Below are positions 9,847 through 45,425 of a DNA stretch of 64,000 nucleotides, in pieces. This DNA comes from Thalia democratica (taxonomy: Eukaryota). The notes beneath the pieces are model-generated. The model saw only the letters and a list, made by a program, of their open reading frames with translations. It did no database searches and was not told the origin of the DNA. The translations under genes and the position numbers were made by a program. Position 1 is the first letter of the stretch; every line of letters starts with the position of its first letter. The stretch covers positions 35,898,001 to 35,962,000 of the forward strand of contig OZ241832.1 in assembly GCA_965202585.1 (NCBI GenBank), in the 5' to 3' direction.

Positions 9847-9934
9847 ATGGTAAAAAAGTATTTCCGCTTTATCTTATTATATTGGTCTTTCTTATGGGCT
9901 GAAAACAAAAATGATAAATTTTACGTCGACTTGA
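9847..9934 (+). pseudogene. Orphan first (signal-peptide) exon of a BPI-like gene
   Basis: Nucleotide homology to exon 1 of A1 (attggtctttcttatgg, tacgtcga.tt.a|gtaaa) and a copy of the upstream gcccttaagtctt block at ~9697. Reads MVKKYFRFILLYWSFLWAENKNDKFYVDL with a phase-1 GT donor. No exons 2-6 of its own. Confidence 0.65.
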
Positions 9935-11269
9935 GTAAAGCAGGTTGTATTAAGTAAGAACAAAAAATCAGTAAAATAAGCAATTAGTAAAAGCAGTTGA
10001 AAAGTTTGTTTTTGAACTAGAACCTAGCTTTTTCTACAATATGATACATTTAAAGTTATAAATTTTAGGAAGCGTTAGTATTTGTGAATTTTAATGGCAA
10101 CTCTTTTATTTTAAGTTTAAAATACTGAAAAGTTAACATTCTGAGGAAAATTCAAACACAAAATATAAAGAAAAAAAATGTTTAAAAATAAACAATACTT
10201 ATGTTAGTTAAATGAAATAAGATATTTTTTGACCAATTAACACATATTGCTTACGAGCGAAATATTTTATACATTAAACTGTCAGTATTGTGATTAACAT
10301 AGTATTATAAGCAATAAATACTTTAACATTTATACAACTACTAGTCAAATTTTGGTCCCTAATAATAAAAAATGTTTAGTTTTTTCTAAAATCAAACCTT
10401 TTCTGCTTAGAATCAGTATTTATATATATATATTTAAAAAGTATATAAAAAAATAGTTAAACTGCTTTATCCAACACTTAATTAAGCTAAGTAAGTATAA
10501 GTAAACTTTTTTTTTGTAGTTAACGATAAAATAAAATAAGTTACAATGTTTTGCAAATAAATAAAACAAACTACATTGATTAACATCTTTGAAAAACGTT
10601 AATAATCGTTTTAATTAAGACAATAAAAACTCCGCTAAATTTATTTAATTAAAATATCTAAAAGTTTTACTACATAAAGTTTTTAATTCATAAGTTAACT
10701 AAAAAAACATTTCAAGTACTGTAGCTAAATTAGTTCTAAGAAAAATAATGAAAGTTTCAAAATTATGACTACTAGATTTTTTATTTGTATACACCTTTTC
10801 GGGAGTGAGTTTTACTATAAATGCATTTAAGCAAAATTCATTTTGCCAAAACAGTTTAAAAGTATTTATGACTTTAGGAGTGTGGTATAAAAACGCTTAG
10901 TATCGCTAAAAATTTATTCTAAAATAACTTGAGAAGTTTTGATGTGTAGCTGTTATTATAGCAGCATAGTTTAAACTTGTTTTTTGTTAACTAATATACA
11001 AAATTAAGTGTTTGTTTCTTGAGTTTGATAATTATTTTATAGAAGCATGTTTATACACTTTAAAACAAACCTTTTATATTTGTTTATAATATTTATATGT
11101 TTAAAATATTATGCAAGGACTGTAGTTTCTGGAATTAAACTACATGTTTTACGAAAACACAATTTTAATCGATAAGAGATATTTATTTAAGCGAGTAATA
11201 TTAGAAACATGTTACTAATCTGTTTAAACTCGGTTTTAAGTGTTAAAAAAAAATTTATCAAGTTTTAAA

Positions 11270-11472
11270 AATCTATGCCCTTAAGTCTTTTGGAGCAAGT
11301 AAAACTGTGTTTGATTGTAAAACAAGTGGTCTTTTAATTTCTGCTACTACGATATTACTTACGTAAAACATTAAATTTGTTAACGTACACCAAACAGCCT
11401 TTTTTTTGGCTTTTAGTATAAAAGAAAAACAATTAACTAATTTTGTCACAATTTATTCCCACATCTAGAAGT
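11270..11472 (+). promoter_or_regulatory. Conserved proximal upstream block of the A-type BPI-like genes, with candidate TATA box at 11417
   Basis: gccct(t/a)aagtcttttggagcaagtaaa(a/g)ctgtgt recurs upstream of A1, A2, A4 and A5, and in part upstream of A3 (-). TATAAAAG lies ~55 nt before the ATG in A1 (11417), A2 (18335) and A5 (42628). Confidence 0.55.
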
Positions 11473-14400
11473 ATGATAACTAAAGTATTTTTGCTTGTTT
11501 CTTGTTTAATTGGTCTTTCTTATGGACTTGAAGTGAAGGGTGATGAAGTTTACGTCGATTTTAGTAAATAAGTTTTAATTGTTCAAATATGTTAAATAGA
11601 TATAAATAACGAATATAAAGCTAATTGAAAGTAAAAGCTGAAAAAGTTATGAAAATTAGCTGTTTAAATATATAATCGGTATTTTTTTTTGTTGTCGTAA
11701 GTTTTTTATTAAGTTTTAAGTACTATCACATTGTAAACTTAAGTGCTAGTTTTATCTGAATATAATGAATATTGAAGTAATTGATTTTTTGTAGAAGAAC
11801 ACCCGGCCACAGCAAATGGAATAGTCAAAGAAGTGAAAAATTTAAAAATTGGCGATATTTCTGGTGATAAAAATGGATACAGCTATAAATTGACCAAGTG
11901 AATTGATTTAGATGTATCATTTATAATTAATACGTACTACAATAAAGTAGACATTAAATTAAGAAGGAAGGAAGTAAAAAACACTACCGTTTAACTATTA
12001 AATAAATAAACAAAAGTATATAGTTGTCATAACTAAGTAATACAAACGTAAAAATAAAAATAAAGTTATGAGCTGTATTGTTTTTATACAACATGTATAT
12101 GTGTCGTTTCAAATAATTTTGTATAAAAAAAAATATTTATTTAAACTTTTAATTCATTAAAAAAAATTTCCATATAACCAACTAAGAAACTATTAGTGGT
12201 TAAAGTGTGAAGTATATGAAGTTTTATTTTAGTTTGCTAAGAACTTAAGAAAAGTATTATAACTAAATTTTAACTTTACCTATTGTCCTGGACAAAACAT
12301 TAAACTGTATCCATAGTGTATGACGCAATAATCAAACGGTTTTTCGTACACCAGGTCCTTGGACTAAACTTATTGGTGCTTTATTTTTTGTCGTTCAATA
12401 AACAATATATACCAAAAAAAAAGAAAGTTTTATTTTTACAGTGTGAAGGTTAATTCATTTTTTGGGGACAAAATAAAAGTCAAACAAAATTCAGCAACTG
12501 ATTATCTTGCTCAGTTACAAAACGGTGAGGTTCATCTTTCTGGAAGTGTTAGAGTGTCAAAGAAAATTTCTGTTACAGTCGGGTAATACAATAAAAATTT
12601 TAAAGTTTAAATAAAAATTTCAAATATAAAATTTTAAACCTTCAAGTAAAATGAATTAAAAACTAAAATAAAAAAATCATAGTTTGGAGATAACAATTAA
12701 AATCTATGTTTTTTTTTTTATCTGTTAAGTTACTTAAAAAGTTGTCAAGAGTACTGTAATACATTGTGTGCTACATTTTATTTCAACCTAAGTTTTATCT
12801 TACTTTTGTAATTATAAACTAAGTAAAAGTTTATTTAAAAGTCATACTACTATAAAAACAAATGTAAAATGTTTCTTAAGCTATATTCACATTCATTTTT
12901 GGAAGTTCTAGTATTGTATTAATTAAGAGTATAAGTATTTTTTTCATAATATAAAAACTAAACTAAATTTTAAGATGCTGATAAAATCATTTTAATTTTC
13001 CTTAACTATTTGTAGTTATTTGTTAAGTATAAAACTTAAAAATTTTTATTCAACTTAGCTATTAACTTATTTTTTTATAGCTTACATTTTCAAACAGATC
13101 TTTAAAAGACTATTTGGTACAAGTAACCCTTAAAGAATAGTTTATTTTTTTTAAGTTGTTATGTACTAATTTTTAAAGTTTATTTGTAGGTAAGTTTTCT
13201 GTTTTAAAATTATTATACTCTTTTTTTAGAAGAACAAAATTTTAAATTTTTTATACAGTTTATAATATTTAAAATAATTCAAAAGTTTATGAAACGGAAA
13301 GCTTTTAAAAAGCATTTAATAAATGTACTGTTTCATTTATTAAAATTATTATTAAATTAAGTATATGTAGTTTTTTTTATCTATAATACTGTGTAAACAA
13401 ATCTTTGCAAATGTAACTGCATAATACTAAAAGGTATAAAAAATTTATTTTACAACTTATTGCATTAAGTTTGTTTTATTTATAAGATTCAGTAACTATT
13501 GATAAAAATATCAGATTTTGGAAATGGAAAAAGACTATATCCAAAACTATATCAGCCTCAGCAACTGCTAATGTGTATCTCAAGCGAGTTTATGTATCTC
13601 AAAATGTTAAAATTCAATTTGTTGGTGGTAAAATAAAGGTAGAGACGTTTTTTTAGACTTTTTTACCAAAACTTTTCGCATTTAGTTCTTAATTCAATAC
13701 AGATTTTATTATTTGAATAAATTCATTTGATGAAAAAACATTACATAACTTTAATATGAGTTAAAAAGACTTATAAAATAATTAAACAAACAACTTTTAA
13801 ATATAAAAGTCATCATATTGTCTTGTCAATGTTACACTAGTTGAAAAAAATGCTTAGTTTATGAACCTCTATGATTTATAACAAAATTTAAAGTATGTAT
13901 AAAACACATTTACACTTGAAACAAGCGCAAAAAAAAAGTAAGTTAAAAATGTATATGAATGATCTCTTTATTTTAGTGCGCTTAACCTACAAAAGACACA
14001 AAAAACGGCTAAGGATCTAAACCGTTAAGTAAAGACTTTTAATACTTTTTAAGACTGTTGAACTCAAAGGTAAAAAATGTAATTAAAACTATAACTAGTT
14101 CTATAAAGTTTTAACTTTATTTCAGACTCAGCCCGGTACCTGTTCAACTAAAATATATTCCCATAAGATAAATTTTGAAGCAAAAGACGCTTTCTCCAAA
14201 CTTATCGCTGGTATTACTAAGTTTCTTTCAAAATTGTTCAGCGGGAAAGTACGGGACTTCATGCAGAAAAAAGTGAGCTACTTTGAAATTAAATTAATTA
14301 AATCGTTAAGTTTTTTTAAGCTTCATTTTAAGATAAAATATACTTAAAGTAAGCTTTGTTTTTTAAGTGAAAATACAGAATGTTTTTTTTTAACTCTAAA

Positions 14401-14674
14401 CAAAATTACAAATTTGACTTATTACAACTATTTACTATAACACAGTATTCAACATTTAAAACAAGCGAAACTTGCTTTTTAATTTTACTGCTACACACTT
14501 TGATTTGTAAGTGTGTTGCCTATACAAACTAACAAGCAAGTTTTTAAAATTTTTATCATCACTGAAATAGTTCTGATTCTTTGTTATTATTCACAGCTGT
14601 GTTCTGCTATCGGAAAATCGTTAAGCAAGCTAGCAGTAGACATGGATATATTAAACGCGCTTGGTGGTCTATGA
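11473..14674 (+). CDS. Secreted single-domain BPI/LBP-like (TULIP) protein A1, 227 aa, cationic
   Basis: Exons 11473-11563, 11795-11897, 12442-12582, 13515-13638, 14126-14272, 14597-14674; all GT-AG, phases 1,2,2,0,0; total 684 nt, open. MITKVFLLVSCLIGLSYG|LEVKGDEVYVDFKEHPATANGIVKEVKNLKIGDISGDKNGYSYKLTNVKVNSFFGDKIKVKQNSATDYLAQLQNGEVHLSGSVRVSKKISVTVGFWKWKKTISKTISASATANVYLKRVYVSQNVKIQFVGGKIKTQPGTCSTKIYSHKINFEAKDAFSKLIAGITKFLSKLFSGKVRDFMQKKLCSAIGKSLSKLAVDMDILNALGGL. Signal peptide, L-K-I-x-D-I-S-G...Y-S-Y motif and the two Cys align with the BPI N-domain. Confidence 0.88.
12313..12405 (+). repeat. Dispersed hairpin repeat copy in intron 2 of A1
   Basis: agtgtatgacgc...tcgtacaccaggtccttggactaaac...aataaacaa. 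Confidence 0.7.
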
Positions 14675-15810
14675 TTCCGCTGGGAACAGTAGTCTCACAG
14701 GTAAAAACATTGTTTGGGTCATATACTCAAGCAAGTTTACTTTTTATTGTTTAAATGTCATCAGATTTGTGTAACAATGGTTTTAGTTTAGATGTTTGTC
14801 TTAACAAAAACATTTTTAAGAAATATTGTAGGTTATGTTGAAATGTAATTTATCTTAACATAATTCAAATTTTACTTATGAATAAAAATGTTTTATTTTT
14901 TAAATTTCCCTTTCATGTTCTTTTTGCTCAGTTTTACAAAGTGTTACTTTCTCGGTAATAAAATACTATTACTTTAGTATAACTTAAATTTTAGCTTTTG
15001 ATTGAGTTATTGCTAATTAGTTGTTTTAAATGCAGTAAAGTTTTTTAGATCGACCGTATCTGTTTTTGTTTAATACATCATATAAATGTGTGTTTGTTCA
15101 GTAACTTATATTTCTAGTTGTTGTATTTTTATCTATTCATCGTAATTAGTTTTACTTAATATTTCACTTAAGTTATCTCTGTCAAAACTACTCTATAAGT
15201 TTTAATTAAGTATAGAAGTAAGCAAATATTAAAATCAAAATTTTTAAATCACTTTTCATAAGTTTAAATACTGTACCTGTAATATATTATTCTCTAACGG
15301 ATGTTTTATTAAATACTTTCTAGTATATTTTGAACAATCTGATTGTTATTATGAGCTTAATACTATTTAGTTTATGGTTTTTCGTTTACTGATTAACTTT
15401 GAATAAATAATTTAATAATGTTAAAGCTTATTTATTAAACTAACATGTGTAGAAATAATGTTTAGAAATTCACAACTGAGTGAAACTCACTGATTTATTC
15501 TTTTTAAACTGGCAATCTGATAAATATAGTTCACGATTTTAACATACAACTTGATCTTTTTTCAAAGCCTTATTAGAGAAACAATGTTTAGTACAAAGCG
15601 GCTATAACTATTTGCAGAAAAAAGAAAACACATACAAATTTATAGTTGGTCAAAAAAGGGTAAAAACTCTAAAAAAAATGTTATAAGCTTAATGTAGGTT
15701 TTTTTATAAAACTCAGTTATTTAAGCTAACAAAGCTTTTTTTGCTTTACTGTCACAGGTTTAGCTGCTTTAGAAAAAAAAAATAACCAGAGTTATTATGT
15801 GAGTATAAAT

Positions 15811-16590
15811 TTGACATCTACCGGATCCGGATATATTTTAAAATTTAAGATCCTGTCGAATCAGGATCCTAAATTTTTTATATATGTATATATAAAGAAT
15901 AAAGTATCTAAAATATTAGGTTACTATAACTTTAAGAGGCAGCAGTTGTTCACCAAATTTTTTAAGTTTTTGCATAATTTTTTCATACTACTGTATATTA
16001 TTTTTCATCTTAATTCTGAACCAATCTAAAAATGAATTCATTTTGTAAAGTTAAAAGTAAAAAAATAAAAAATCTTGATGAACAATTGCTGCCTCTTAAA
16101 GTTATAGTAACAAAGTATTGAATGAGCTGTATTTTTTTGAGTTTTTATATAATTCAATATATTCAAATGAGAATAACATAGTTAAATTAAAATTGTAAAG
16201 ACCTTTAACAAGTTAAAAAACATTAAAATTTAAATATATGTTTTATATTTAAAAAATAAAATATTTTAAATTTATATAGAACTAAATTATAAAGTCAGAA
16301 GAAAAATCCAACCTGCAAGAAATTTAAATTAACAATTCACTATTTTTCTCTAATGGATTTATGTACCTAAATGTTTACAACAAATGATTGAACTAACTAA
16401 ACTTTAATTAATCTGTTTTGCTTGACTAGTTTTATATGTATTACATATTCAAAATGATAAAACTGAAAGAAGCTGATCGCGGAAAACAAAGTCTTTCCAA
16501 ACTAACTGGATCCGGATAAGGCCAAATCTCAGCTAAGATCCGACCAGATCCGGTTCCAAGCAAAAAATGGCCGGATACGGTAGATCACTA
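15811..16590. mobile_element. hAT-type MITE, older than the tandem duplication, with a nested small MITE
   Basis: Ends ttgacatctaccgg / cggtagatcacta; ccggatcc subterminal repeats; flanks gtataaat / gtgtaaat (8 bp TSD, one mismatch; perfect in the unit 2 copy). Confidence 0.75.
15920..16111. mobile_element. Small MITE with ~33 bp terminal inverted repeats
   Basis: gttactataactttaagaggcagcagttgttca at 15920 versus tgaacaattgctgcctcttaaagttatagtaac ending 16111; duplicated at 24544-24736. Confidence 0.75.
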
Positions 16591-18390
16591 GTGTAAATAT
16601 GATAAACGTAAAAATTTATTAAAACCAGTGTTTTAAGGAAAATAAAAACTTGTTGAAGAATTCATCAAAAGTATAAGCAACTTAGATTTAACAGTGTTTA
16701 ATGCGTTAATTATTATTATTAATCTATTTTAAGGCATTTTTTTTTGTATTTTATAAAAATTATTTTTGTAAATATATTGTTACTTAAAGATAAAAAAAAA
16801 AACACCAAAAACTAAATTAAAAAGAATAATCTAATAGACACACACTGAAAAGTTCTGAAGGTTTTTGTCATTTAAGAAGCAATCTACTTAGCTACACAAA
16901 ATCCTAACCCGAACAAACCAGCTCAAACATTATGTCAGTTTTTAAACCAGAAGCAGACTGCCAGGGTTAAAGTTTAAACCATTGTCCAAAAAACAAATAG
17001 TCGGGGTGCCTTAAGTTTAAAATACTGAAAAGTTAATATTCTGAGGAAAATTTAAACACAAAATATGAAGTAAAAAAAGTAAAATATTTGAAAATAAACA
17101 ATACTTATGTTAGTTAGATGAAATGCAATATTTTTTGACCAATTAACACATATTGCTTACGAGCGAAAAGTTTTATACATTAAACTGTCAGTATTGTGGT
17201 TAACACAGTATCATGAGCAATAACTATTTTAATATTTACACTACTTATAGTCTAATTTTGGTCCAAATAATAAAAAAAGTTTAGTTTTTTGTTAAACCAA
17301 ACATTTTCTGCTTAGAACCCGTGTTTGAATATATTTAAAAATATATATAAATAAAAATATTTAAACTGCTTTATCCAACACTTCATTAAGCTAAGTAAAT
17401 ATGAATATTTTTTTCTGTAGTTAACGATAAAATAAAACGAAACGAGTTAAAATGATTTGCAAGTTTATAAAAAAAACTACGTTGAGTAACTAAAGGCATC
17501 TTTAGAAAATATATTTTACCGTTTCTATTAAAACAATAAAAACTCCGACAAATTTATTATATATTCAAAATATCTAAAATTTTTACTACATAAAGCTTTT
17601 AATTCATAATATTAACTAAAAAAACGTTTCAAGTACTGTAGTTAAATTAGTTCTAAGTAAAATAATAAAAATTACGAAAATTATAGCTGTTAGATTTTCA
17701 TTTGTATACACCTTTTCGGGAGTGAGTTTTACTATAAATGCATTAAAGCAAAATTCATTTTGCCAAAACAGTTTAAAAATACTTATGACTTTAGGAGTGT
17801 GGTACAAAAACGCTTAGTATCGCTAAAAATTTATTCTAAAATAACTTGAGAAGTTTTGATGTATAACTGTTATTATAGCAGCATAGTTTAAACTTGTTTT
17901 TTGTTTACTAATATACAAAATTAAGTGTTTGTTTCTTGAGTTTGATAATTATTTTATAGAAACATGTTTATTCACTTCTAAACAAACCTTTTATATTTGT
18001 TTATAATGTTTATATGTTTAAAATATTATGCAAGGACTGTAGTTTCCGGAATTAAACTACATGTTTTACGAAAACACAGTTTTAATCGATAAGTGATATT
18101 TATTTAAGCGAGTAATATTAGAAACATGTTACTAATCTATTTAAACTCGGTTTTAAGTGTTAAAAATTTTTTTATCAAGTTTTAAAATTCTATGCCCTTA
18201 AGTCTTTTGGAGCAAGTAAAACTGTGTTTGATTGTAAAACATGTGGTCTTTTAATTTCCGCTACTACTATATTACTTACGTAAAACATTAAACTTGTTAA
18301 CGTACACCAAACAGCCTTTTTTTTTGGATTTTAGTATAAAAGAAAAACAATTAACTAATCTTGTCACAATTTATTCCCACATCTAGAAGT

Positions 18391-21300
18391 ATGATAACTA
18401 AAATATTTTTGCTTGTTTCTTGTTTAATTGGTCTTTCTTATGGACTTGAAGTGAAGGGTGATAAAGTTTACATCGATTTTAGTAAATAAGTTTTAATTAA
18501 ACAAATATATTAAATAAATATAAATAACGAATATAAAGCTAATTGAAAGTAAAAGCTGAAACAGTTACCAAAAGTAGCTGTTTAAATATATAATCGGTAT
18601 TTTTTTTTGTTGTGGTAAGTTTTTTATTAAGTTTTAAGTACTATTACATTGTAAACTTAAGTGCTAGTTTTATCTGAATGTAATGAATATTGAAGTAATT
18701 GATTTTTTGCAGAAGAACACCCGGCCACAGCAAATGGAATAATCAAAGAAGTGAAAAATTTAAAAATTGGCGATATTTCTGGTGATAAAAATGGATACAG
18801 CTATAAATTGACCAAGTGAATTGAGTTAGATGTAACATTTATAATTAATACGTACTACAATAAAGTAGACATTAAATTAAGAAGGAAGGAAGTAAAAAAC
18901 ACTACCGTTTAACTATTAAATAAATAAACAAAAGTATATAGTTGTCATAACTAAGTAATACAAACGTAAAAATAAAAATAAAGTTATGAGCTGTATTGTT
19001 TTTATACAACATGTATATGTGTCGTTTCTAATAATGTTGTATAAAAAAAATTTGTTATGTAAACTTTTAATTATTTAGAAAAAAATTCCACTTAACCAAT
19101 AAGAAACTATTAGTGTTTTAAGTGTGAAGTATATGAAGTTATATTTTAGTTTGCTAAGAACTTGAGAAAAGTATTATAACTAAATTTTACCTTTACCTAT
19201 TGTCCTTAACAAAACATTAAACTGTATCCATGGTGTATGACGCAATAATCAAACGGTTTTTCGTACACCAGGTCCTTGGACTAAACTTATAAGCGCTTTA
19301 TTTTTTGTCGTTCAATTAACAATATATACCAAAAAAAAAGAAAGTTTTATTTTTACAGTGTGAAGGTTAATTCATTTTTTGGGGACAAAATAAAAGTCAA
19401 ACAAAATTCAGCAACTGATTATCTTGCTCAGTTACAAAACGGTGAGGTTCATCTTTCTGGAAGTGTTAGAGTGTCAAAGAAAATTTCTGTTACAGTCGGG
19501 TAATACAATAAGAATTTTAAAGTTTAAATAAAAATTTCAAATATAAAATTTTAAACCTTCAAGTAAAATGAATTAATAACTAAAATAAAAAATCATAGTT
19601 TGGAAATAATAATTAAAATCTATGTTTTTTTTTCTATCTGTTAAGTTACTTACAAAGTTGTCAATAGTACTGTTATACATTGTGTGCTACATTTTATTTC
19701 AACCTAAGTTTTCTCTCACTTTTGTAATTGTAAACTAAGTAAAAGTTTATTTAAAAGTCATACTACTATTAAAACAAATGTAAAATGTTTCTTAAGCTAT
19801 ATCCACATTCATTTTTGGAAGTTCTAGTATTGTATTAATTTAGAGTTTAAGTATTTTTTTAATAATATAAAAACTAAACTAAATTTTAAGATGCTGATAA
19901 AAGCGTTTTAATTTTCGTTAACTTTTTGTAGTTATTTGTTAATTTAAAACTTAAAATTTTTATTCAACTTAGCTATTAACTTATTTTCTATAGCTTACAT
20001 TTTCAAACAGATCTTTAAAAGACTATTTGGGAAAAGTAACCCTTAAAGAATAGTTTATTTTTATTAAGTTGTTATGTACTAGTTTTTAAATTTTATTTGT
20101 AGGTAAGTTTTCTGTTTTAAAATTATTATACTCTTTTTTTAGAAGAACAAAATTTTAAATTTTTTATACAGTTTATAATATTTAAAATAACTCAAAAGTT
20201 TATGAAACGAAAAGCTTTAAAAAGCATTCAATAAATAGGACTGTTTCATTTATTAAAATTATTATTAAATTAAGTATATGTAATTTTTGTTATCTATAAT
20301 ACTGTGTAAACAAATCTTTCCAAATGTAACTGCATAATACTCAAAGATATAAAAAATTTGTTTTACAACTTATTGCATTAAGTTTGTTTTATATATAAGA
20401 TTCAGTAACTATTGATAAAAATATTAGATTTTGGAAATGGAAAAAGACTATATCCAAAACCATATCAGCCTCAGCAACTGCTAATGTGTACCTCAAGCGA
20501 GTTTATGTATCTCAAAATGTTAAAATTCAATTTGTTGGTGGTAAAATAAAGGTAGAGACATTTTTTAGACTTTTTTACCAAAACTTTACGCATTTAGTTC
20601 GTAATTCAATACAGATTTTATTATTTGAATAAATTCATTTGATGGAAAAATATTACATAACCTTAATATGAGTTAAAAAGACTTATAAAATACTTAAACA
20701 AACAACTTTTAAATATAAAAGTCATCATATTGTTTTGTCAATGTTACACTAAAAAAAAAATGCTTAGTTTATGAACCTCTATGATTTATAAAAAAATTTA
20801 AAGTATGTATAAAACACATTTAAACTTGAGATAAGCGCAAAAAAAAAGTAAGTTAAAAATGTATATGAATAATGCCATTATTTATAGTGCGCTTTATTAA
20901 CCTACAAAAAAGACAAAAAACGGCTAAGGATCTGAACCATTAAGTAAAGACTTATAACACTTTTTAAGACTGTTGAACTCAAAGGTAAAAAATGTAATTA
21001 AAACTATAACTAGTTGTATAATATTTTAACTTTATTTCAGACTCAGCCCAGTACCTGTTCAACTAAAATATATTCCCATAAAATAAATTTTGAAGCAAAA
21101 GACGCTTTCTCTAAACTCATCGCTGGTATTACTAAGTTTCTTTCAAAGTTGTTTAGCGGGAAAGTACGGGACTTCATGCAGAAAAAAGTGAGCTCCTTTG
21201 AAATTAACTTAATTAAATCGTAAATTTTTTTTTAGCTTCATTTTAAAATAAAATATATTTAAAGTAAGTTTTGTTTTTTAAGTGAAAATACAGAATGTTT

Positions 21301-21588
21301 TTTTTAACTCTAAACAAAATTACAAATTTGACTTTTTACAACTATTTACTATAACACAGTATTCAACATTTAAAACAAGCGAAACTTGCTTTTTAATTTT
21401 ACTGCTACACACTTTGATTTGTAAGTGTGTTGCCTATACAAATTTTTAAGCAAGTTTTTAAAATTTTTATCATCATTGAAATAGTTCTGACTATTTATTA
21501 TTATTCACAGCTGTGTTCTGCTATCGGAAAATCGTTAAGCAAGCTAGCAGTAGACATGGATATATTAAACGCGCTTGGTGGTCTATGA
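18391..21588 (+). CDS. Secreted single-domain BPI/LBP-like protein A2, 227 aa, cationic
   Basis: Exons 18391-18481, 18713-18815, 19359-19499, 20428-20551, 21041-21187, 21511-21588; GT-AG, open. By hand 12 of 684 nt differ from A1 (5 replacements: V5I, E25K, V28I, V>I in exon 2, G>S in exon 5; 7 silent). Confidence 0.88.
19231..19322 (+). repeat. Dispersed hairpin repeat copy in intron 2 of A2
   Basis: tggtgtatga...tcgtacacca stem followed by ggtccttggact. Confidence 0.7.
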
Positions 21589-22425
21589 TTCCGCTGGGAA
21601 CAGTAGTCTCACAGGTAAAAACATTGTTTTGGGTCATATACTCAAGCATGTTTACTTTTTACTGTTTAAATGTCATCAGATTTGTGTAACAATGGTTTTT
21701 AGTTTAGATATTTGACTTGACAAAAACATTTTTAAGAAATATTGTAGGTTATGTTGAAATGTAATTTATCTTAACATAATTCAATTTTTCACTTATGAAT
21801 AAAAATGATTTTTTTTTAATTTCCTTTTCATGTTCTTTTTGCTCAGTATTACAAAGTGTTACTTTCTCGGTAATAAAATACTATTACTTTAGTATAACTT
21901 AAATTTTAGCTTTTGATTGAGTTATTGCTAATTAGTTGTTTTAAATGCAGTAAAGTTTTATAGATCGACCGTATCTGTTTTTGTTTAATACATTATATAA
22001 GTGTGTGTGTTCAGTAATTTATATTTCTAATTGTTGTATTTTTATCTATTCATCGTAATTAGTTTTACTTAATATTTCACTTAAGTTATATCTGTCAAAA
22101 CTACTCTATAAGTTTTAATTAAGTATAGAAGTAAGCAATTATTAAAGTCAAAATTTTTAAATCACTTTTAGAACCCATTATAGATTTCTTTTTATTTAGC
22201 TTTAAAATACAAAAAAAAAACATAAAATATATAATCGAAATTAATAAAAATATTATTTTATTAGCTTTATTGAAGACAAAGTATCTTGTTTTTAATAAAA
22301 ACGGAAGTTTGAATACTTTACTTATAATAAAATCTGAATAACTGTTACAAAGAATAATATAAAAATAATAAGTCAACTGTCGGTTTTTAATTTTACACAA
22401 TTTTAGCAAGAAGCTACTATACTAA

Positions 22426-23741: not shown

Positions 23742-24435
23742 TACTATACAAAGCATAAAAAAAAAATTGTTTACAAACTTTTCTTGGATCAAAGTAACGA
23801 GTTTTACAACCCTGGTCTTTGGACCTTATAAACATACTGTCTGAGCTGGTTCATTCAGACTTGGATAGTATCAAGGCATAAAATTCATAAGTTTAAATAC
23901 TGATCGTTTAATATATTATTCTCAAACGGATGTTTTATTAAATACTTTCTAGTATATTTTGAACAATCTGTTTGTTATTATGAGCTTAATACTATTTAGT
24001 TTATGGTTTTTCGTTTACTAATTAACTTTGAATAAATAGTTTAATAATGTTTAAGCTTATTTATTAAACTAACATGTGTAGAAATAATGTTTAGAAATTC
24101 ACAACTGAGTGAAACTCACTGAGTTATTCTTTTTAAACTGGCAATCTGATAAATATAGTTCACGATTTTAACATACAACTTGATTTTTTTCAAAGTCTTA
24201 TTCGAGAAACAATGTTTAGTACAAAGCGGCTATAATTATTTGCAGAAAAAAAAACACATACAAATTTATAGTTGGTCAAAAAAGGGTAAAAACTCTAAAA
24301 AAATGGTATAAGCTTAATGTAGGTTTTTTTATAAAACTCAGTTATTTAAGCTAACAAAGCTTTTTTTGCTTTACTGTCACAGGTTTAGCTGCTTTAGAAA
24401 AAAAAAATAACCAGAGTAATTATGTGAGTATAAAT

Positions 24436-25216: not shown

Positions 25217-25518
25217 GTATAAATATATTAAACGCAAAAATATATTAAAACCAGTGTTTTAAGGAAAATAAAAACTTGTTGAAGAATTCATCAAAAGTAT
25301 AAGCAATTTAGATTTAACAGTGTTAAATGCAGTAATTATTACTATTAATCTATTTTAAAGCATTTTTTTTGTATTTTACAAAAATTATTTTTGTAAGTTA
25401 CTTAAAGAACTTAAAAAACACCTAAAACCAGAATAAAAAGAATAATCCAATAGACACACACTGAAAATTTCTGATATATTTTGTCATTTAAGAAGCAATC
25501 TACTTAGCTACACAAAAT

Positions 25519-27954: not shown

Positions 27955-28110
27955 TCGGTGCACGACTGTTCAAATTCGGACAATTCAAATTCCGACAGTT
28001 TAAATTGAATAATATATAATAATTTTATAGTTGTGGGCCTTGAATTATATATTTTTTTAATTTCAATTGTCTGAATTTTAATCGTCCAAGTTTGAATTGC
28101 ATTGTAACCC
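27955..28110. repeat. Small palindromic MITE-like relic with ttcaaatt(c/t)ggac units
   Basis: ttcaaattcggacaattcaaattccgacag on the left; inverse aattgtctgaatttt..gtccaagtttgaa on the right. Confidence 0.45.
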
Positions 28111-34699: not shown

Positions 34700-35729
34700 A
34701 TGTTAACTAAAATATTTTTGCTTGTTTCTTGTTTAATCGGTTTTACTTGTGGACTTGAAGTAAAGGGTGATGTAGTTTACGTCGGTTTTAGTAAATAAGT
34801 TTTAAAAAAGTTATTATATTTTTAAGTAAATATAAAAAGTTATAACAACTATCAAAAGTGTTTGGCAAATTTTTGTAGTTAAACTAAAACATTGATATTT
34901 AAAATAATAGAAGTTATCTGTTCGCTAAACTTAAATTGTTACTAGATTCTACAATTCAACGAACAACTTTAACTAATCAAAAAAAATAATTAACTTTTTG
35001 TTTTTGTAGAAGAACATCCAGACACAGCAAATGAAATAATCAAAGAAGTAAAAGGTTTAAAGATCATCAACGATTCTTTTTATAAACATCATAAAGGAAT
35101 GAGCTTTTCATTGACCAAGTAAATAATTTTTTTGTATCTATTGTAAGTACTTACTTAAATAACAGAAAGTTTTGATCATAACACTTAAATCATCAGACAA
35201 TTTGCTGGTATGGTGGTATGATCAGTAACTTCAGCCTTGTTTAACTGCTGCGCAACGTTTTAAGTAGTATGAAAAAAACTTGCCATTAACATTTTGAGCT
35301 TGTATCACGGCACATGAAAGTTTAATTTCGACTCTGATATTTTTCGCTGATGTTTTATTTTTTAAACAAAATTAATAAAAACTAAACTTAATAAAGAAAG
35401 AAAAAAATTCTAACAATGGAGTAAATAATAAAACTAATAGCTTAAATAATTTGTACGTCAAAAACTAATAAAAATAAGTGCAAAAAAAAAAGTATACATA
35501 TCAAAATATAAATGGTCATCTTTAGTATACAATAAAATAAACAGAATATATTAAAAGTTTAGATTTTTTTTTAAATCAATTTTTACAGTGTGAAGGTGAA
35601 TTCATTTAATGCGGACAAAATAAAAGTTAAACAGAATTCAGCAGCTGATTATCTCGCTCAGTTACAAAACGGTGAGGTTCATCTTTCTGGAAGTGTTAGA
35701 TTGTCAAAGAAAATTTCACTTACAGTCGG
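34700..35729 (+). pseudogene. 3'-truncated BPI-like copy A4 (exons 1-3 only, frames intact)
   Basis: Exons 34700-34790, 35010-35118 (+6 nt, IINDSFYKHHKGMSFS) and 35589-35729. Homology to A3 intron 3 stops near 35830; no exon 4-6 homologue found before gene B. Confidence 0.8.
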
Positions 35730-36934
35730 GTAAAACAGTTTAAATTCAAATAAAATTAGTAATTAAAATACTTAAATAATATAGTGTAAAACCTAAGCCA
35801 TAAAAGTTGTATTTAGGAGATGAAAGCGTGGAAATTCTTATAAAATTGTTACATAAAAAATGAACTGTCTTATTAAATTAACTTTTCAACCTAATTAAAT
35901 TTTTAATTATTAATTCGATTTTACATTTACATTTAATTTATTTTAATATATTTAAATAGAAATATGGTAAATGAAAATTTTCATAATAAACAATATTTCA
36001 AAGACAATTAAAAACAGTTGGATATGTCTAAAAATTTAACAATAAATTTTACAATTTAGCTACATTTAGTACAGTAAATATTATCTTGTATCTATTTTAA
36101 ATCATATTTTTGTTTGTTAAAGAAGCTTAGCTTAAAATCTTAAAGTACTGATAGTTTCCGAAATAAACCTAGAAATAACAGAATCTGGTTATTAGAGTAT
36201 GTTTTATCCATAACTTTCAATAATAGTATAAAACTCAAAATCATTATTCAAATACTAATTCCGCATATAACAAACATTAGCGCCAAGTTAGCCGTAGAAC
36301 TAAGACAACTGTAATTTTAAGTTATTAATCTTGTTGTGTAAAATAAATCGTTATATGACAGAATTTTATCTAGAAAGTAGTTAGCTAAAAGTACTCGTTA
36401 ATAATTTTACGTCATAAAATTAAATGAGAAAAGTAAAATAACTCATTTTTAAAGTACGTTAAAGATTAATTTCAATTAGTCGAGTTGTATGTCCGAACAG
36501 AAGTAATAAAAGTTTTGCAAGTTACAAAATTAAATATTTTTTGGTAATTTAACAATACTTTTAATTTCTTTTTTAATTAAAAATTCCATAACGTTTTATA
36601 TTTAACAAATATATGTTTTTATATTTAGGTAGACGTACTATTTATTATTTGTCTAAAACTTCTACTAACGATGAAAACATTCTGTGTTTTTTAAATTATT
36701 AATAAATATTGAGTTAAACATGTTTATTATAAAAAAAATCGAATAAAAAGCCATACAATAAGAATTCATACATTATAAATGCTTTGAAATAATATTGTTT
36801 TAGTTTTACACTATACTAAGCTTTTAAAATGAAAATACAAAAAAAAAACGATACGATAGATATGAGTATGAGTTACTATAAAATAAAAACAACACAACAA
36901 AGTTTCATTATATAAACTCAATTTGTTTTATTCT

Positions 36935-39900
36935 TCACATAAGTTGTGCCATCACCTCGTTCAAGTTTATGCTGTCCAGAGCTTTTTGTATTATTGGCCT
37001 TACTGTTGGACAAATCTGTTTAAAATATTAGAGACATATAAAAAAGTATGATTGCAGAATACGAAACCAAAATAGCTACTTATTGTAAATAGGGCAAAAA
37101 TGTGAAGATAACTTTACATAGTTTAGTTGCGTGCTTTTAGTTACTAGACAAAAGCAAAACAGTGATGATTGTCTTTTAATGAAAAAAAAACAGAAGTAAA
37201 ATTTTATACTATAACTCTTTACTTAAGTTTTTGTAAACTGGCTTAAAATAGATAATCACATAATTAAGTTTGTGAAACAGTAAAAAACAGACATACAAAA
37301 AATACTTTCTTTTTTTATTAGAAGCTTGTGAAACTATCTTTTAAACCTTAACTTTGTAGATATCCACGAATTTTACGTTTCAATTTACTTAAAAGCAGTT
37401 TTAAAATGAATAAAAGACAGAAATAAAATTCCAAATACTAAACAAGACGTTTTAAATCTTAAAATCTTAAACAACTGCTGCATTAACTATCACGGCTGCA
37501 TTCAAACGAAAGAGCGAAAAACGTTTCGACAAATTTCTCAAATACGAACTGCTCCAACAAACCTTTTCGCTTGCCAACTTCTTAATCACTCCTTTAAAGC
37601 TCGCCTTGACATATTGCCCAATGACAGCGATGAGGTTGCCCCAGAAGTTTTTACCTTGTATTTCGTAGTTTATGTTGCCCACCCTGCTCACACATGCTCC
37701 TACTTCAGCCTTTGAAAAATTAAACAGTTTGTTTAACGTTTGTTAACGAACATGCTTTTTTTACGTTTGTAACGATTTCAGTTTCTAAGGTGCTTAAAAC
37801 GCTGTTTTTATAAGAAGTTTTGATGTCAAATTCTGTAAATTTAAACTTCATCATAATTATTTATTATGACAGTTGTATACATTTTCTAATTTAAATTTAC
37901 TGACAACAACTATTAAGATTGTCAATAAAACTATTAGCATTTATAATATTTATAAAACATTTTAGCATCAAGCTTAAGTAATGACTACACTTAATTGAGC
38001 TTTAATGATGTTTTTATTCGCTAGTCGCTGTAAGTATTAAATAATATTACTTTCAATAGATGTTTTTAGTAAAAATTTATTTTCTTTTTAACGTAGACCA
38101 AAGAACTCCTGAAAAAACAAAGCATTTTTAATTCCTTGTTATTTATATTTCAATTAAAAGTAAACAGCTTTTTACTTTTATTAGGCAGAGAATAGTTGTT
38201 TAAAATAAAGATTCATGAACTAAAAACATTATTTTGACTCTTGTTTAAGGGCTTATAATATTCTAAACAGTGTTAACTTAATTAAATTTTCACTTTTAAT
38301 ATGTCCTACGTTTTGGTTTATTGATTTTTTAGTCAATAAAAGAAGTTTTAAAATTGTTTTGTGTTGTTAAAAGTCATCAAATAAAAACTTTAGCGTCTGT
38401 TTAGAACTTATACTTGTGATTATAAATAAAGTCTAACCATGGGTTTTCTGTATGCTTCACGATTTATATTCATATTTAAAGTTGGTTTTAATTAATAGTA
38501 GTTAAGTATATGAAGCGAACGTACCAACAAAATTATTTTTTTAATCAATCTTATTAGTAAAACGATCTTAATGTATGATAACATTTGCTTGTTTTGAACT
38601 AAACAGCTAAATATTTTTATAATCGTTTTTTAAGCGAAAAAATTAGAAAAATGACTTAAGTAAGCGCTTCAAGGTACTATAACTATGAAAAAATTAGTAA
38701 ACTACCTGTATATGTTTTTGATTTTAGCTGTATATTGAACCTAAAAAAACTATAACTGCAAAATATGTTTATAGTTTTAAGAACTAACTTTGGCTTTATG
38801 ACAAAACTGTAATTAGAATTTATTTTATCAAACTTAAGTAACATATAAATATTTTTAAGTTTATTTAAACTTATATTTGCTATTTTATAAACTTTTTAAA
38901 ATAGTTTGTTTTACAACTTATTAGCTGAAATAACTTTTGTATTCATACCTAAACAAAAATGGCTTATAGATCCTTTTCTTTTGATATTAATTTGTAATTT
39001 ATACTGAAGTTTAACAAAACCATACAAAGTGACACGCTAAGATGTTCAACTCAAATTACCAATGTTTCTAGTAAATTTTAAGTAATTTTTGATCTATGAC
39101 AAATAAATAACTTTTAAACTGTTTATATTATAAGATAATGCGCTTCAAGAGTCTTACACTTTCTTTTAAAGCAGTTTTAGTTATTATGAAGTAACGATTT
39201 CTACGTACTTTTTAATATATTAAATAATGTAAGGTATCCTTCTTACGCTACGAAAAAACTAACCACTAGCTGGCCGTCTACTTCGTTGATTTTGATAGCT
39301 TGGGAAAATTCCAAATCAGAAAGGCTAGCTTTAACATGAACGCTTGCATCCACTGTTTTTGTAAAAAACCAAATCCTACGAAAAAAGTTAAAAAAATGTG
39401 ATTCTTATTTTTTTTTAATTTTTTAGTTTTGATTCCAAATTCAGTAATATATTTCAGGAAAGTTTAAAAATATACATTATCATTAGTAAAAAATTCTGCT
39501 AACTTTCAAATGGTAGATAGACAGTTTTACTAAATTAATTACAAGTAAGTTTGAAGCGTGCTAAGTTTAATTACAATTTAACAGAGTATTATTGTTTGAA
39601 AAGGTCAGCTTGTTCCATTTGGGTAACTTAACAACACGGTAGCAAGTTTGCTAATTTTGTTCTACTGAAGTTAATTTAAAAAAAAAATCAATAGTAGTAG
39701 ATAAATAATTAGATGAGTTTTACAAACTTACTTAATTTCTTTCACTGCCGTAACATCAGCTTCAATGCTCGCAGACAAGCCGTCGAGATCAACCCTGAAA
39801 ATATTGCCTCCGCTAGCAACCAGCTTCGCCGATCCGACATTGAAGCCCGTCACTTTGATGCTGAAAAGTTACGTCATAAAAGCTTTACTACCATCTTCAT

Positions 39901-40836: not shown

Positions 40837-41750
40837 TTTGATCTTATAAACTTTATACGATCAGTGCAAGTAAGATTGGTGATAATTTTGAGTTTCCACA
40901 CTATTTATACGTAATTTTTTCCATGTAGAAGCCTAGTTTGCTAAAGCCTTAGGGCGATTTGTACGGTAATCTCTTTGTGGCAAAGTGTATCGTAATGTTT
41001 TTGAGCTGCATTTTAAGCATCTATCAATCAAATCACTTGCGAATTTAAGCTGTTCATATTTAATGTTTGTTTTAAATCTACCAAAATAACAATTTTATTT
41101 TAAATTAAGTAAAAAAACCATACTTAGATAACTAGATATTACTGTGCTTTAAAACATAGTTTTTGAAAGCAGATTAGTACAAGCAGCTTTGTAAAAGTAG
41201 AAACATAAAAGAAAATTTTACTTGAACAAAATATCAATTTTAATTTTCTTAAACCTTTTTAAATAGACAAAAAAGTAAAATTTTTAATTGGGCTCCTTAA
41301 AAGTAAGAAAGACCTCAAAAAGTTTTTATTTCTTCTTATTCTTTAAGTTTGGTATATTTTCAAACCTTGAACAGTGCTTTTTTTAGAAAACCAATAAATA
41401 AAAACTCTTAATTCTTATGAAAGCCTAAGTTTTACTTGTTTTATTTATTTTACTACCAAATGTACGTAGGAAAAACTAAAAGTAAAATATAATAAAAGTT
41501 ATTTATTCTGATAACTGTATTTGTTTTCTATAAAAATGTGGATGATTATTATATTCTGCAGTCTTTTATTGATTTTAAAAATTCAAATGAAGTTATACAG
41601 TTATTTGAATTTACTAAAAATTATTGCTTAAATTACTGTAAAGTAAAAAGCTTGTTTAAGTAATAATAAAATTGCAAATTATTTTTTCTAGTCTTTCCCA
41701 CCGAAACCAGGTAACCAACAGAGTAGTTAATTTGCACTTTTATACATCAT

Positions 41751-41836
41751 TTATTGAACGACAAAAACACTCAAAAAGCTTGGTCCAAGGACCTGGTGCA
41801 CGAAAAAAACCTTTCGGTTATCGAGTCATGCACCAG
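41751..41836 (-). repeat. Dispersed hairpin repeat copy between the divergent genes B and A5
   Basis: Reverse complement reads tggtgcatga-ctcgat-aaccgaaaggtt-tttt-tcgtgcacca-ggtccttggacc. Confidence 0.75.
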
Positions 41837-42349
41837 AACAGTTTAACGTCATGTCCAGGACTACTTATTATTATGTGAATGAAGAAATTAAATAATTTTT
41901 CTACTAAAAAACACAAAAGAATGTTATAAAACTTTTATAAACTTATTCTTGGTAACTTTAACATTAATAAATTTGTCTAAAATAGACAAGGTTAAACTTT
42001 TCAATTTCAAAAAGTATTAAAACGAGGTATACAACATTTTGCACAGTACTTACTTTATTTAACTAACGTAAGATTATCTGCATTAAACTAATAACACAAC
42101 TCCACGGAGTTATGAAACTATAAGTACTACAAAGAGTAAAAGATAAAGAAAATGTAGATGTGTATTTTCTATGCTATCATAAGTAAATATAAAAAACAAT
42201 TAACTAATAACTATGACAATATATACAAGTTTAGTTTGCAGATTACTAATTTACATACTTTTAATATTAATACTACATTAATAGAAACAGTTTGATATAT
42301 TCTATTTGTACTTTTTAAGTAAAACATGTTAAAAGAATTTATGTAAGGA

Positions 42350-42681
42350 ATGTAGTTGCCGAAACTAAAATACCACATGTTTTACAAACACACAACATTA
42401 TTTTCTGAATAAGAATTAGTGACACGATTTTTATTAATATATGTTACTGAGGTTTTTAAATCGTCTTAAAGTGTGTAAATACTTAATCATGGTCTATTAT
42501 TTCATGCCCTTAAGTCTTTTGGAGCAAGTAAAGCTGTGTGGTTTTCAGTTTCGGCGACTACTTTCTTTGCATGAAACATGAATTTATACTTGTGTTTATT
42601 AAACATATTTTTTTAGTTAGATTTTAGTATAAAAGACAAACAGTTTATAAAACTTACACAAGTATTCCTACATCTAGAAGT
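42350..42681 (+). promoter_or_regulatory. A5 upstream region with paired inverted GAAACT(A/G)AAA motifs and candidate TATA box
   Basis: gaaactaaaa at 42361; ttttcagtttc (= GAAACTGAAAA on -) at 42542; TATAAAAG at 42628. Same motif pair upstream of A3 (31989, 32173) and A4 (34384, 34570). Confidence 0.45.
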
Positions 42682-45425
42682 ATGATAACTAAAGTATTTT
42701 TGCTTGTTTCTTTTTTAATTGGTCTTTCTTATGGACTTGAAGTGAAGGGAGATGAAGTTTACGTCGATTTTAGTAAATAAGTTTTTATTAAATAACTATA
42801 ATTTTGAGTTAAAGCAAAATTTATAACAATTATCAAGTTTAACTTGTTAAACTATTTTTGTAAAATTATAGCTTAGTATTTTAAGCTTTTGAAACTATAG
42901 AAATAATTTGTTTGTTAAAAGTAAAGTGTAATGTTTCCTTAAAATAAAATAAAATCTGACTTTAAAGATATTTGCACTGATGTTTATTTAAAATATTTTT
43001 GTAGAAGAACATCCAGAAACAGCAAACGAAATAATCAAAGAAGTAAAAGGTTTAAAAATCAGTAATACTTATGGGAAAGAAAAGGGAATAAGCTATTCAT
43101 TGACCAAGTAAATGAATTAGTTTGTATCTATAATAAGTATTTGCTAAAAAATCAATATTGAAGGTAAACAAATACAATAAAAATGGAAATGTATATAAAA
43201 ACTTATAGATAACTTATTTGTATTTCAAAGTATAAGGAATTAAACTCAAGAAAAACAAGCTCGAAAAAATTAAATTAAAAGTCGAGCTAATATATAATTT
43301 TTGAAACTTTTTTATTTTTACTAAGATCTGTGTCGTTTTTAATTATTATTATGATAAATTTTCAAAAAATTAATTTACTATGAGCTTAGCTTCTAAAAAC
43401 TTGTTTCACAAACTAACCTACTAAGAAACTGTTACTATTAAAATTTTCAAAAATTTGTAATTTTAGTTTGTGTATTGTACGAATTAAAAAGAGCTACTAT
43501 ATTTAAGTTTAGAAATGTTTTTTAAAAACTTTATTTTTACAGTGTGAAAGTGAATTCATTTAATGCAGACAAAATAAGAGTCAAACAGAATTCAGCAACT
43601 GATTATCTCGCTCAGTTACAAAACGGTGAGGTTCACCTTTCTGGAAGTGTTAGATTGTCAAAGAAAATTAAGTTTGTTTAATCAATCGGTACTAAAATAT
43701 ACTTTACTTTTGTTTAGGATAATATAATAATGTTAATTTAAGTATACTAATAAATGGTATCAACAATTTTTATACACTATAAAATACTAATCAGATTATA
43801 TAATAACGAGTTTAATCTTAAAGGTATTTCATTCATACCTGTTAATTTTTTGAATTTTTTTTCAGCTTTTAAGTATCTTTAACAACCTTTCCAAACTAAA
43901 GATTACTAAGTTTTTAAAACTGTTACTTATGCAGAACTTCTGTAAGTCATACTACTAACAACAACTTTTATCCAAATCGAAGTCAACTTTAGTAACTTGA
44001 ATATTGCATTGTTTAATAAAACAAACATGTTTTAATTAAAATAACAACCAAACTGTAAATAAAAGTTTGTAAATATAACTGCAAAACTTTTAAAACATAA
44101 AACATAAGCAAACTTTTATATAAATTTAAAATTTAAACGTCTTTTTTTACGTATGAGGTACAGTAATACTACAAATAATTATTTTAGTAAAATATTAAAG
44201 GTTTTTATTCTGGTCAAAAACTATATCGGCCTCAGCAACTGCTAATGTGTATCTCAAGCGAGTTTATGTGTCTCAAAATCTCAAACTTCAATTTCTCGGT
44301 GGTAAAATAAAGGTAGAGAAACAAATTTAGTTCTTTTTATTTTAAGATTATTGTTTAACCCTTGATTCTTTACTAAAATAAGATTTTGTACTTTACCAGA
44401 AACTTATTCGTGAAACAAAGGTTTAGATAATTTATAAAACATAAGTATAATATAATTGTGAAATTATAATTTAGGCGTATATATAGTTATAAATATATGA
44501 TATATCTATATAAAACTACATCAAAAAGCATGTTCTTAATTTTAAGTTTGATTTGTCGGTTTATACGATTTTTTTTTTATTAAAAAAAAAAATTAAATAG
44601 GAAACATTTAATCAATTCATTTGAAGTAAGATTGGTAAATAAAGAAAAAACTTCTCATTAGTCTAATTACTACAAATACTTAGATTTGAAGTTTTTCGTT
44701 TTGAGACTGTTAATGTTTTAACGATAAATAAAAATATTTTTCAAAAAGAAAGTTTAGCTAAAACTTTTACTAAAAAAATTTCAGACTCAACCGGGAACCT
44801 GTACAACTAGAATATATTACCATAAAGTAAATTTCAAAGCATCAGGATTTTTTTCTAAGATTATCGCTGCTATTGCCAACATTGCTTCAAAGTTGTTTAG
44901 TAAGAAAATACGGGATTTCATGCAAAGCAAAGTTAGTTTTTTAAGTTATCCCTTTGACAAGTATGTTTACAATTTTTGTCTTAAATAAGTTATTCAAAGT
45001 TTGTTTAAAAAAACCTTTCCATTTTAATCTGCTCTAGATAAAATCACAAACTTAACTTAGTAAAGTTATTGAAAAAGTTGAAGTAATTTCAATATTGATT
45101 ACAAAGTCTAATTTGACTACATACTTGACTAAGATTCTGTTTAGTTTATTTTCCAAGAGCTCTACTCTAGAACTAGTAAAATAAATCCTTAACTTTTCCT
45201 AAGTTAATTTTGCTTATATTTATTACAACATTCTATTACAACTAATGGTTTCAAAAACTTTTTTTAATTTACGATTAACTGAAAAACTAAGTTATTTCAC
45301 ATTTTTTCCTTATTAGAAACTCTTTTAATTTTTTATATCATTCACAGATGTGTTCTGCTATCGGAAAATCGTTAAGCAAGTTAGCAGTAGATATGGATAT
45401 ATTAAACGCGCTTGGTGGTATATGA
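42682..45425 (+). CDS. Secreted single-domain BPI/LBP-like protein A5, 219 aa, cationic, short-hairpin form
   Basis: Exons 42682-42772, 43005-43107, 43543-43671, 44201-44312, 44785-44931, 45348-45425; GT-AG (exon 4 acceptor AAG), open. Tip reads SGSVRLSKKIK|FLFWSKTISAS; exon 5 TQPGTCTTRIYYHKVNFKASGFFSKIIAAIANIASKLFSKKIRDFMQSK. Confidence 0.85.

Follow-up and report, generated by a model that had tools for sequence, protein, structure and literature searches.

Vertebrate airways and skin contain one-barrel proteins of the BPI fold, among them the short PLUNCs and latherin, and arthropods have such proteins in Takeout, JHBP, and Der p 7. On its own, BPI's N-terminal domain binds lipopolysaccharide (LPS), kills bacteria, and neutralizes endotoxin, and the C-terminal domain adds opsonization; the recombinant fragments rBPI21 and rBPI23 comprise BPI residues 1-193 and 1-199, respectively (PMC8187252). 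The invertebrate BPIs studied so far are two-barrel proteins, and a recombinantly produced N-terminal domain from one of them, oyster Cg-BPI2, binds LPS and kills Gram-negative bacteria (PMC10672452). Here we report a cluster of genes for short BPI-like proteins in a 64-kb stretch of an 802-Mb animal genome (the window, in whose coordinates positions are given). According to the structural model, each protein, approximately 200 aa long once mature, is a single TULIP barrel of the BPI/LBP N-terminal type, with no central sheet, no linker, and no second barrel. The genes are expressed, their splicing follows the models, and the transcripts add no second barrel. The cluster adds a real new branch to a well-known family; one-barrel BPI-fold proteins are themselves a known kind.

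Results

Gene models and cluster layout

The cluster (9845-45425) comprises five complete six-exon genes (A1, A2, A3, A5, and B), a truncated copy (A4), and a decayed first exon (Table 1). It lies in very AT-rich DNA (22-29% GC across the region). A bacterial-style listing of open reading frames (ORFs) contains short pieces only, among them one 45-47-aa piece that occurs five times and a signal-peptide-like piece that occurs twice. Comparison of the window with itself revealed one 4-kb stretch repeated at 95% identity, plus three more diverged copies, one of them inverted. For A1, the conserved pieces were read together with their GT/AG borders, yielding six exons. For A2, A3, and A5, the splice combinations around the homologous pieces were searched exhaustively, with the same structure as the outcome. 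B, which is encoded on the minus strand and is much more diverged, shows the same six-exon structure, and its intron phases agree with those of the A genes. The phases (1,2,2,0,0) and GT..AG introns are common to all five complete genes. The count and coordinates proposed in the initial annotation (five complete genes, one truncated copy, and one orphan exon) were recovered by self-comparison and splice-aware modelling.

The A proteins are 76-98% identical to one another, with A1 and A2 the closest pair (98%), and B is 19-25% identical to them. The stop codon of A1 is at 14672-14674 and is followed by AATAAA at 14881. In A4, the frames and splice sites of exons 1-3 are intact, and no motifs of exons 4-6 were identified within 35730-36935, up to the 3' end of B. 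The frame of the exon 1 relic is broken, and its Met and the end of its signal peptide now lie in different frames. The gene array is not a product of chance, given the identity among the A genes, ratios of nonsynonymous to synonymous substitution rates (dN/dS) below 1, and introns that are matched in RNA.

A search of the window against Rfam returned no match. A repeat of approximately 95 bp (78% identity) is interspersed in the region, with one copy inside intron 2 of A1 (12316-12409) and others at flanking 8404-8498, 41741-41861 (minus strand), and 46635-46727 (minus strand).

Table 1. Features of the gene cluster, its duplication units, and related exons elsewhere in the genome.
Feature	Position	Strand	Exons or basis
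Exon 1 relic (orphan pseudo-exon)	9845-9953	+	75-78% identical to exon 1 of A1/A2
A1, 227 aa	11473-14674	+	11473-11563, 11795-11897, 12442-12582, 13515-13638, 14126-14272, 14597-14674
A2, 227 aa	18391-21588	+	18391-18481, 18713-18815, 19359-19499, 20428-20551, 21041-21187, 21511-21588
A3, 226 aa	31864-28660	-	31864-31774, 31555-31453, 30983-30843, 29964-29841, 29328-29182, 28734-28660
A4, truncated copy	34700-35729	+	34700-34790, 35010-35118, 35589-35729
B, 215 aa	40836-36935	-	40836-40758, 40605-40506, 39860-39732, 39375-39264, 37709-37563, 37015-36935
B/A5 spacer, 1.85 kb, between divergently transcribed head-to-head pair	40837-42681	.	gene models
A5, 219 aa, short-hairpin form	42682-45425	+	42682-42772, 43005-43107, 43543-43671, 44201-44312, 44785-44931, 45348-45425
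A1/A2 tandem duplication, ~6.9 kb, ~94% identity	units 10111-16902, 17011-25518	.	blastn self-comparison
Third-type exons	L005 6531-6662, L006 8273-8407; C1:77302530, C1:77319273	+ (L005), - (L006)	single-exon E 3.6e-5, 6.7e-4

Transcripts and protein ends

RNA contigs could be placed on 14110-14880, the 3' part of A1; they come from the source animal or a near-identical one. The joint across intron 5 (14272 to 14597, GT..AG) is exact in contigs of two runs, X4 and X7. For intron 4, the contigs of both runs carry the last 30 bases of exon 4 as a loose end before 14124. Depth within the spliced-out intron (14272 to 14597) is zero in both runs. The contigs cross the stop codon of A1 and continue into the 3' untranslated region (UTR), and no other joint or loose end departs from the exon 5 donor or from exon 6 in the RNA contigs on 14110-14880. 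One further X4 contig of 673 nt covers 14625-14880 with six other letters and one gap, and continues for approximately 416 nt past 14880. It may stem from A2 or from an allele, and either a longer isoform of the 3'UTR or a transcript that overlaps it might account for the extension.

Relatives of the window genes are transcribed in marine samples. Searching exon 3 alone against 1.84 billion representative proteins led to P0002, a 225-aa protein from a marine metatranscriptome that is 86% identical to A5; another relative, P0005, is 89% identical. Each exon of A5 is matched in turn by the transcript contig that encodes P0002 (L001); identity is 86-93% and drops to 73% in the 3'UTR. The alignment breaks at all five A5 junctions, base for base, and the contig has the same stop codon, followed by 211 nt of UTR. 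Bases 1-227 of this contig are an inverted copy of bases 234-456, most likely a hairpin artefact of assembly. A profile search identified P0011 (215 aa, 83% identical to B) in the same sample as P0002, and its contig (L007) breaks at all five B junctions. The 360-nt 3'UTR of this contig is colinear with the genome for approximately 330 nt past the B stop codon, down to 36604. Related marine transcripts are 77-93% identical to A5 and B at the DNA level. A search for related loci among metagenome contigs returned none.

The initial annotation had placed the stop right after the helix that follows the second Cys and had read the proteins as one-barrel forms with predicted splice junctions. The junctions were found in transcripts (introns 4 and 5 of A1, and all five of A5 and B), and all ORFs end approximately 10 residues after the long C-terminal helix that bears the second Cys. 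Seven relatives known from transcripts have C termini that differ in position by just a few residues. The RNA enters a colinear 3'UTR, with exons 5 and 6 joined to no further exons, and PF02886, the second barrel, has no match in any family protein. Because RNA crosses the stop codon without an onward joint and the ends of the relatives coincide, we conclude that the family proteins are truly short.

Family assignment and predicted fold

The assignment to the LBP/BPI/CETP N-terminal domain family (PF01273), which the initial annotation had put forward for checking, comes from transcript-derived proteins that are 80-89% identical to A1, A5, and B. P0002, P0005, P0006, P0011, and P0007 match PF01273 with 42.8, 41.0, 39.7, 38.4, and 29.3 bits, respectively, above the curated cut-off of 28.8 bits. 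The matches extend from profile positions 5-11 to 167-168 of 168 and include both A-type and B-type proteins. No other Pfam family scores comparably for the transcript-derived relatives. Specifically, neither PF06585 (Takeout/JHBP) nor PF16984 (group 7 mite allergens) matched any of five family proteins at E<=10. Neighbours found by protein language model are all TULIP proteins: group 7 allergen, JHBP, latherin-like PF01273 proteins, takeout, and two-domain BPI. The nearest named clusters among them are Grp7 allergen, JHBP, latherin-like, and takeout.

We modelled the mature A-type protein with AlphaFold2 (AF2) from a 33-row alignment of A- and B-type transcripts and exon translations of A1, A3, B, a diverged copy on contig C10, and a B copy on contig C7. 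The model reached a mean predicted local distance difference test score (pLDDT) of 86.4 and a predicted template modelling score of 0.79. It comprises a short hairpin, a helix (16-27), long antiparallel strands (34-146), and one long helix (151-191). Foldseek searches of the PDB placed BPI (1EWF, E 1.9e-9), CETP, and LBP on top (E 1e-9 to 1e-7, probability 1.00), followed by Der f 7, JHBP, SPLUNC1, and Takeout. Among reviewed UniProt models, the top 26 matches are all N-terminal barrels of two-barrel proteins. A shape search of the ESM Atlas found two-domain BPI at a template modelling score of 0.73. Z scores from VIA-align are 15.7 for LBP, 15.2 for BPI, 12.7 for CETP, 11.2 for latherin, 11.0 for BPIFA1, 10.8 for Der f 7, and 9.8 for JHBP; sequence identity in these alignments is 15-19% for the LBP/BPI N-terminal barrels versus 7-11% for BPIFA1 and latherin. 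The TULIP barrel suggested from the sequence is thus what the model predicts, and the modelled fold is clearly closer to the BPI/LBP N-terminal barrel than to BPIFA.

Residues 37-219 of the human BPI precursor align to model residues 7-191 of 201. Subtracting the 31-residue leader of BPI (487-aa precursor, 456-aa mature protein) puts the end of the model at approximately residue 198 of mature BPI. Barrel N of BPI in the crystal structure comprises residues 10-193. From these limits, each family protein would correspond to one complete barrel without the central sheet.

Charge, cysteines, and hairpin

The mature A-type proteins are strongly basic, with isoelectric points and net charges of 9.85 and +19 (A1), 9.92 and +21 (A2), 9.57 and +11 (A3), and 9.84 and +17 (A5). 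Mature B is acidic (5.16 and -4). In the A types, the charge is +3/4 in the exon 3 segment, +7/9 in exon 4, and +5/8 in exon 5; in B, exon 5 alone is positive. Each mature protein has exactly two cysteines, and both are invariant in 14 full-length sequences. In a weak hidden Markov model alignment, the first aligns with an LBP cysteine and the second is offset by approximately four residues. Over the first 17-18 residues, mean hydropathy in a 10-residue stretch is 2.6-3.2, and positions -3 and -1 are occupied by small residues.

The hairpin between the two longest strands falls at the junction of exons 3 and 4 and occurs in two lengths. The long form (exons of 141+124 nt) is found in A1-A4 and P0006, and the short form (129+112 nt) in A5, A6 (a copy on contig C10), B, and other transcripts. 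Through shifted splice sites, the long form gains eight residues, extra lysines included. Its putative counterpart in BPI/LBP belongs to the cationic LPS-binding tip. A (K/N)I-x-D-(I/Y)-S-G segment, listed in the initial annotation as a family hallmark, is only loosely kept, as KIGDISG in A1, NLDDISE in B, and KISNTYG in A5.

Evolution and copies elsewhere in the genome

The genes evolve under purifying selection. Frames are intact in all five complete genes, and pairwise dN/dS is 0.15-0.73 (0.20 for A1-A2, with dS of 0.048). Birth-and-death evolution, as had been proposed, fits the family because there are a recent tandem duplication, the truncated A4, the relic exon, a pseudogene elsewhere (B3), and dN/dS in this range. 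Gene number grows through tandem and segmental duplication, with some copies being lost. Of the two units of the A1/A2 duplication, the second alone contains a 1.7-kb insert (22169-23884), with 16-34-bp tandem repeats at 22969-23104 and 23414-23554.

Additional copies lie on other contigs; exon-wise genome searches are too insensitive for counting family members. Contig C10 (L004, 25528500-25538499) carries an intact gene, A6 (219 aa, 94% identical to A5), head-to-head with B3, an arrangement that mirrors the A5/B pair of the window. B3 has become a pseudogene: its fourth codon is a stop and the frame of exon 1 is shifted; the 10 kb analysed do not cover all of it. The A6/B3 and A5/B spacers are 80-83% identical, about as expected from the age of the duplication. 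C10 also carries a diverged A-like gene, and contig C7 an intact B2 that is 68% identical to B and 90% identical to transcript P0021.

On contig C1, the exon-wise search gave weak matches to two exons of a third, more LBP-like type of PF01273 gene (Table 1). ORFs downstream of these exons have no PF02886 match. The exon-wise genome search for PF02886 also returned none, and is too insensitive to show presence or absence of a two-barrel BPI. The same contig contains a GC-rich block (L006, approximately 2400-3800) with long overlapping ORFs in several frames within very AT-rich DNA, which may be a mobile element or a foreign insert.

Surroundings of the cluster

Upstream of the cluster, a single 842-aa ORF runs without interruption through positions 2184-4712 (plus strand); its product resembles a TBCK-like protein and combines protein kinase, RabGAP-TBC, and rhodanese domains. 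This ORF is apparently intronless amid an intron-rich region, and its nearest Atlas clusters are nematode and arthropod TBCK. Two domains informative on the animal's phylum, the cuticle domain PF00379 of arthropods and the GH6 domain PF01341 of the tunicate type, were searched for, and neither was found. At approximately 61400-63500 (minus strand) are putative exons of a ClpX-like AAA+ ATPase, a reading made by eye from the sequence; a 71-aa piece matches AAA_2 weakly (23.7 bits versus a cut-off of 27). Two arrays of a 41-bp GC-rich unit (CCGGATCCGG...; 25529-25622 and 26625-26753) are 94% matched and lie approximately 1 kb apart. These may be the ends of a mobile element.

Discussion

Novelty and significance

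At the sequence level the family is very restricted: searches of 5.8 billion proteins yielded approximately 20 matches, each of which comes from a marine metatranscriptome or a marine assembly; because of this, it is unlikely to carry a useful annotation anywhere. Short entries with PF01273 only are already present in the AlphaFold DB for other invertebrates, and the ESM Atlas holds unnamed clusters of approximately 200 aa with the same shape. A literature search of incomplete coverage, which is weak evidence of novelty, found no account of a natural, expressed, and clustered BPI/LBP family with N-terminal barrels only in a marine invertebrate. The finding means that a marine animal makes the BPI/LBP-type N-terminal barrel alone as a normal product, from genes that are expressed and a cluster that is expanding.

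Proposed function and alternatives

By analogy with BPI, we lean toward the view that in this lineage-restricted family of one-barrel proteins the cationic A types are secreted antimicrobial or endotoxin-neutralizing effectors with LPS or other anionic lipids as ligands. The proteins would be secreted through the N-terminal hydrophobic leader. The A types, with net charges of +11 to +21 located mostly in exons 3-5 and including the hairpin, probably bind anionic amphipathic lipids such as lipid A, with the acyl chains held in the apolar pocket and the phosphates on the lysine-rich surface. They could then act as soluble antimicrobial or endotoxin-neutralizing effectors at a body surface. Opsonic or transfer functions, which the second barrel gives to BPI and LBP, would be missing from them. 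The acidic B type may use the same fold for another ligand or role. If the A types do bind LPS and kill bacteria, nature has reached the same minimal effector as rBPI21/23, and the family would offer diverse, naturally stable N-terminal barrel scaffolds and a handle on how planktonic animals manage their surface microbes.

Several observations weigh against this reading. Single exons of the window (A1) had no match in Pfam, single exons being too short, and the membership of the window proteins in PF01273 rests on the relatives that are 80-89% identical to them. Sequence profile searches of the PDB gave no match with one family alignment and a weak LBP match (E 0.054) with another. A first AF2 run from five near-identical sequences reached a pLDDT of 36.9, and the good model depends on the 33-row alignment, which is drawn from this family alone. 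The signal peptide was judged by eye and hydropathy only. The immune role itself would follow by analogy with BPI. As the acidic B shows, the fold can come without a cationic, LPS-type surface, and many single-barrel TULIP proteins (Takeout, JHBP, latherin, and BPIFA1) are carriers or surfactants and are not bactericidal.

The last two points lead to a possible, less probable alternative, namely that these are secreted one-barrel proteins without an immune role, either carriers of hydrophobic small molecules (a hormone, pheromone, carotenoid, or dietary lipid) or surface-active mucus proteins. Precedents for such roles are Takeout/JHBP, the locust beta-carotene-binding protein, latherin, and BPIFA1, and reviews of TULIP proteins describe carrier and surfactant roles for one-barrel forms (PMC5507252). 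One-barrel carriers and surfactants are among our structural matches (Z 7.5-11) and supply the nearest named language-model clusters, and a carrier role fits B, which is acidic and lacks a cationic surface, at least as well as an effector role. However, sequence and structure are both clearly closer to the BPI/LBP N-terminal barrel than to any carrier family, and Pfam finds neither carrier-type domain, Takeout/JHBP or group 7 allergen. Lysine charge in the A types is also very high and is concentrated in the segments from exons 3-5, which resembles the LPS-binding half of BPI. An effector role for the A types remains the likelier reading.

Two further explanations concern how the genes work together and whether they are complete. 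An A and a B protein, encoded head-to-head and released together, might form a non-covalent "split BPI," or B might mask or direct A. The pair recurs as A6/B3 on C10, A and B have opposite charges, transcripts of both types come from one metatranscriptome sample, and TULIP domains commonly dimerize (PMC5507252). If true, it would be a modular build of a BPI-like defence molecule that is not known from vertebrates. A milder version of the idea would see the A types as natural counterparts of rBPI21 that keep surface bacteria in check in a planktonic animal of the sea. We consider the pairing improbable: the partner in the second pair, B3, is dead, whereas A6 is intact; B is an N-type rather than a C-type barrel; the residues of the central sheet, which in BPI link one barrel to the other, are missing from both proteins; the spacer between A and B is conserved no more than the age of the duplication predicts; and the window holds four to five A genes for one B. 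A complex prediction for mature A (P0005) and mature B (P0011) returned a score of 0.00 with controls not run, and counts neither way. That the genes are ordinary two-domain BPI/LBP genes with an overlooked second half, or non-functional debris, is practically refuted. The null from the exon-wise search for the C-terminal domain means little, given its insensitivity, but the A1 RNA runs through the stop codon with nothing leaving the exon 5 donor or exon 6. The coincident ends of the seven relatives, the UTRs behind the stop codons of L001 and L007, and purifying selection on five intact frames also speak against this explanation.

Comparison with known systems

Among the closest described systems is the N-terminal barrel of human BPI. 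The family shares with it the order of a short helix, a long sheet, and a long helix, apparently a pattern of two cysteines, and, in the A types, a strongly cationic character. Identity to human BPI is just 18-20%. The cysteine pair of BPI is Cys135-Cys175, a spacing of 40 residues compared with 45 in the family. The natural C terminus of the family lies within a few residues of the ends of the engineered fragments rBPI21 and rBPI23. Those fragments are cut-down proteins, whereas here the one-barrel form is a natural gene product, known from its sequence and a structural model.

LBP, CETP, PLTP, oyster Cg-BPI and Cg-BPI2, and squid EsBPI2/4 belong to the same Pfam family, PF01273, and LBP is the best structural match of all (Z 15.7). 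LBP, CETP, PLTP, and the invertebrate two-domain BPIs differ in having a second barrel (PF02886), a central sheet, and a proline-rich linker, none of which is present in the window proteins.

Among one-barrel forms, the short PLUNCs (BPIFA1, latherin, and BSP30) resemble the putatively secreted proteins of this cluster in being secreted BPI-fold proteins encoded in rapidly evolving tandem clusters, with Z scores of 8-11. They are less similar to the family than is the BPI/LBP N-terminal barrel (Z 11 versus 15-16, with 7-11% identity) and have no sequence-level link to it beyond the shared Pfam family. The initial annotation had proposed the cluster as an invertebrate counterpart of the short-PLUNC/BPIFA locus. 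This holds as an analogy of one-barrel architecture and does not hold as descent, as the predicted fold is nearer to the LBP/BPI N-terminal barrels. It is likelier that the second barrel was lost, or was absent, independently of the short PLUNCs, making the resemblance one of analogy rather than orthology. Takeout/JHBP and Der p 7/Der f 7 are also secreted one-barrel TULIP proteins of approximately 200 aa (Z 7.5-10.8), but they rank below BPI and LBP in structural comparisons, have different disulfide patterns, and belong to Pfam families (PF06585 and PF16984) that the proteins of this cluster do not match.

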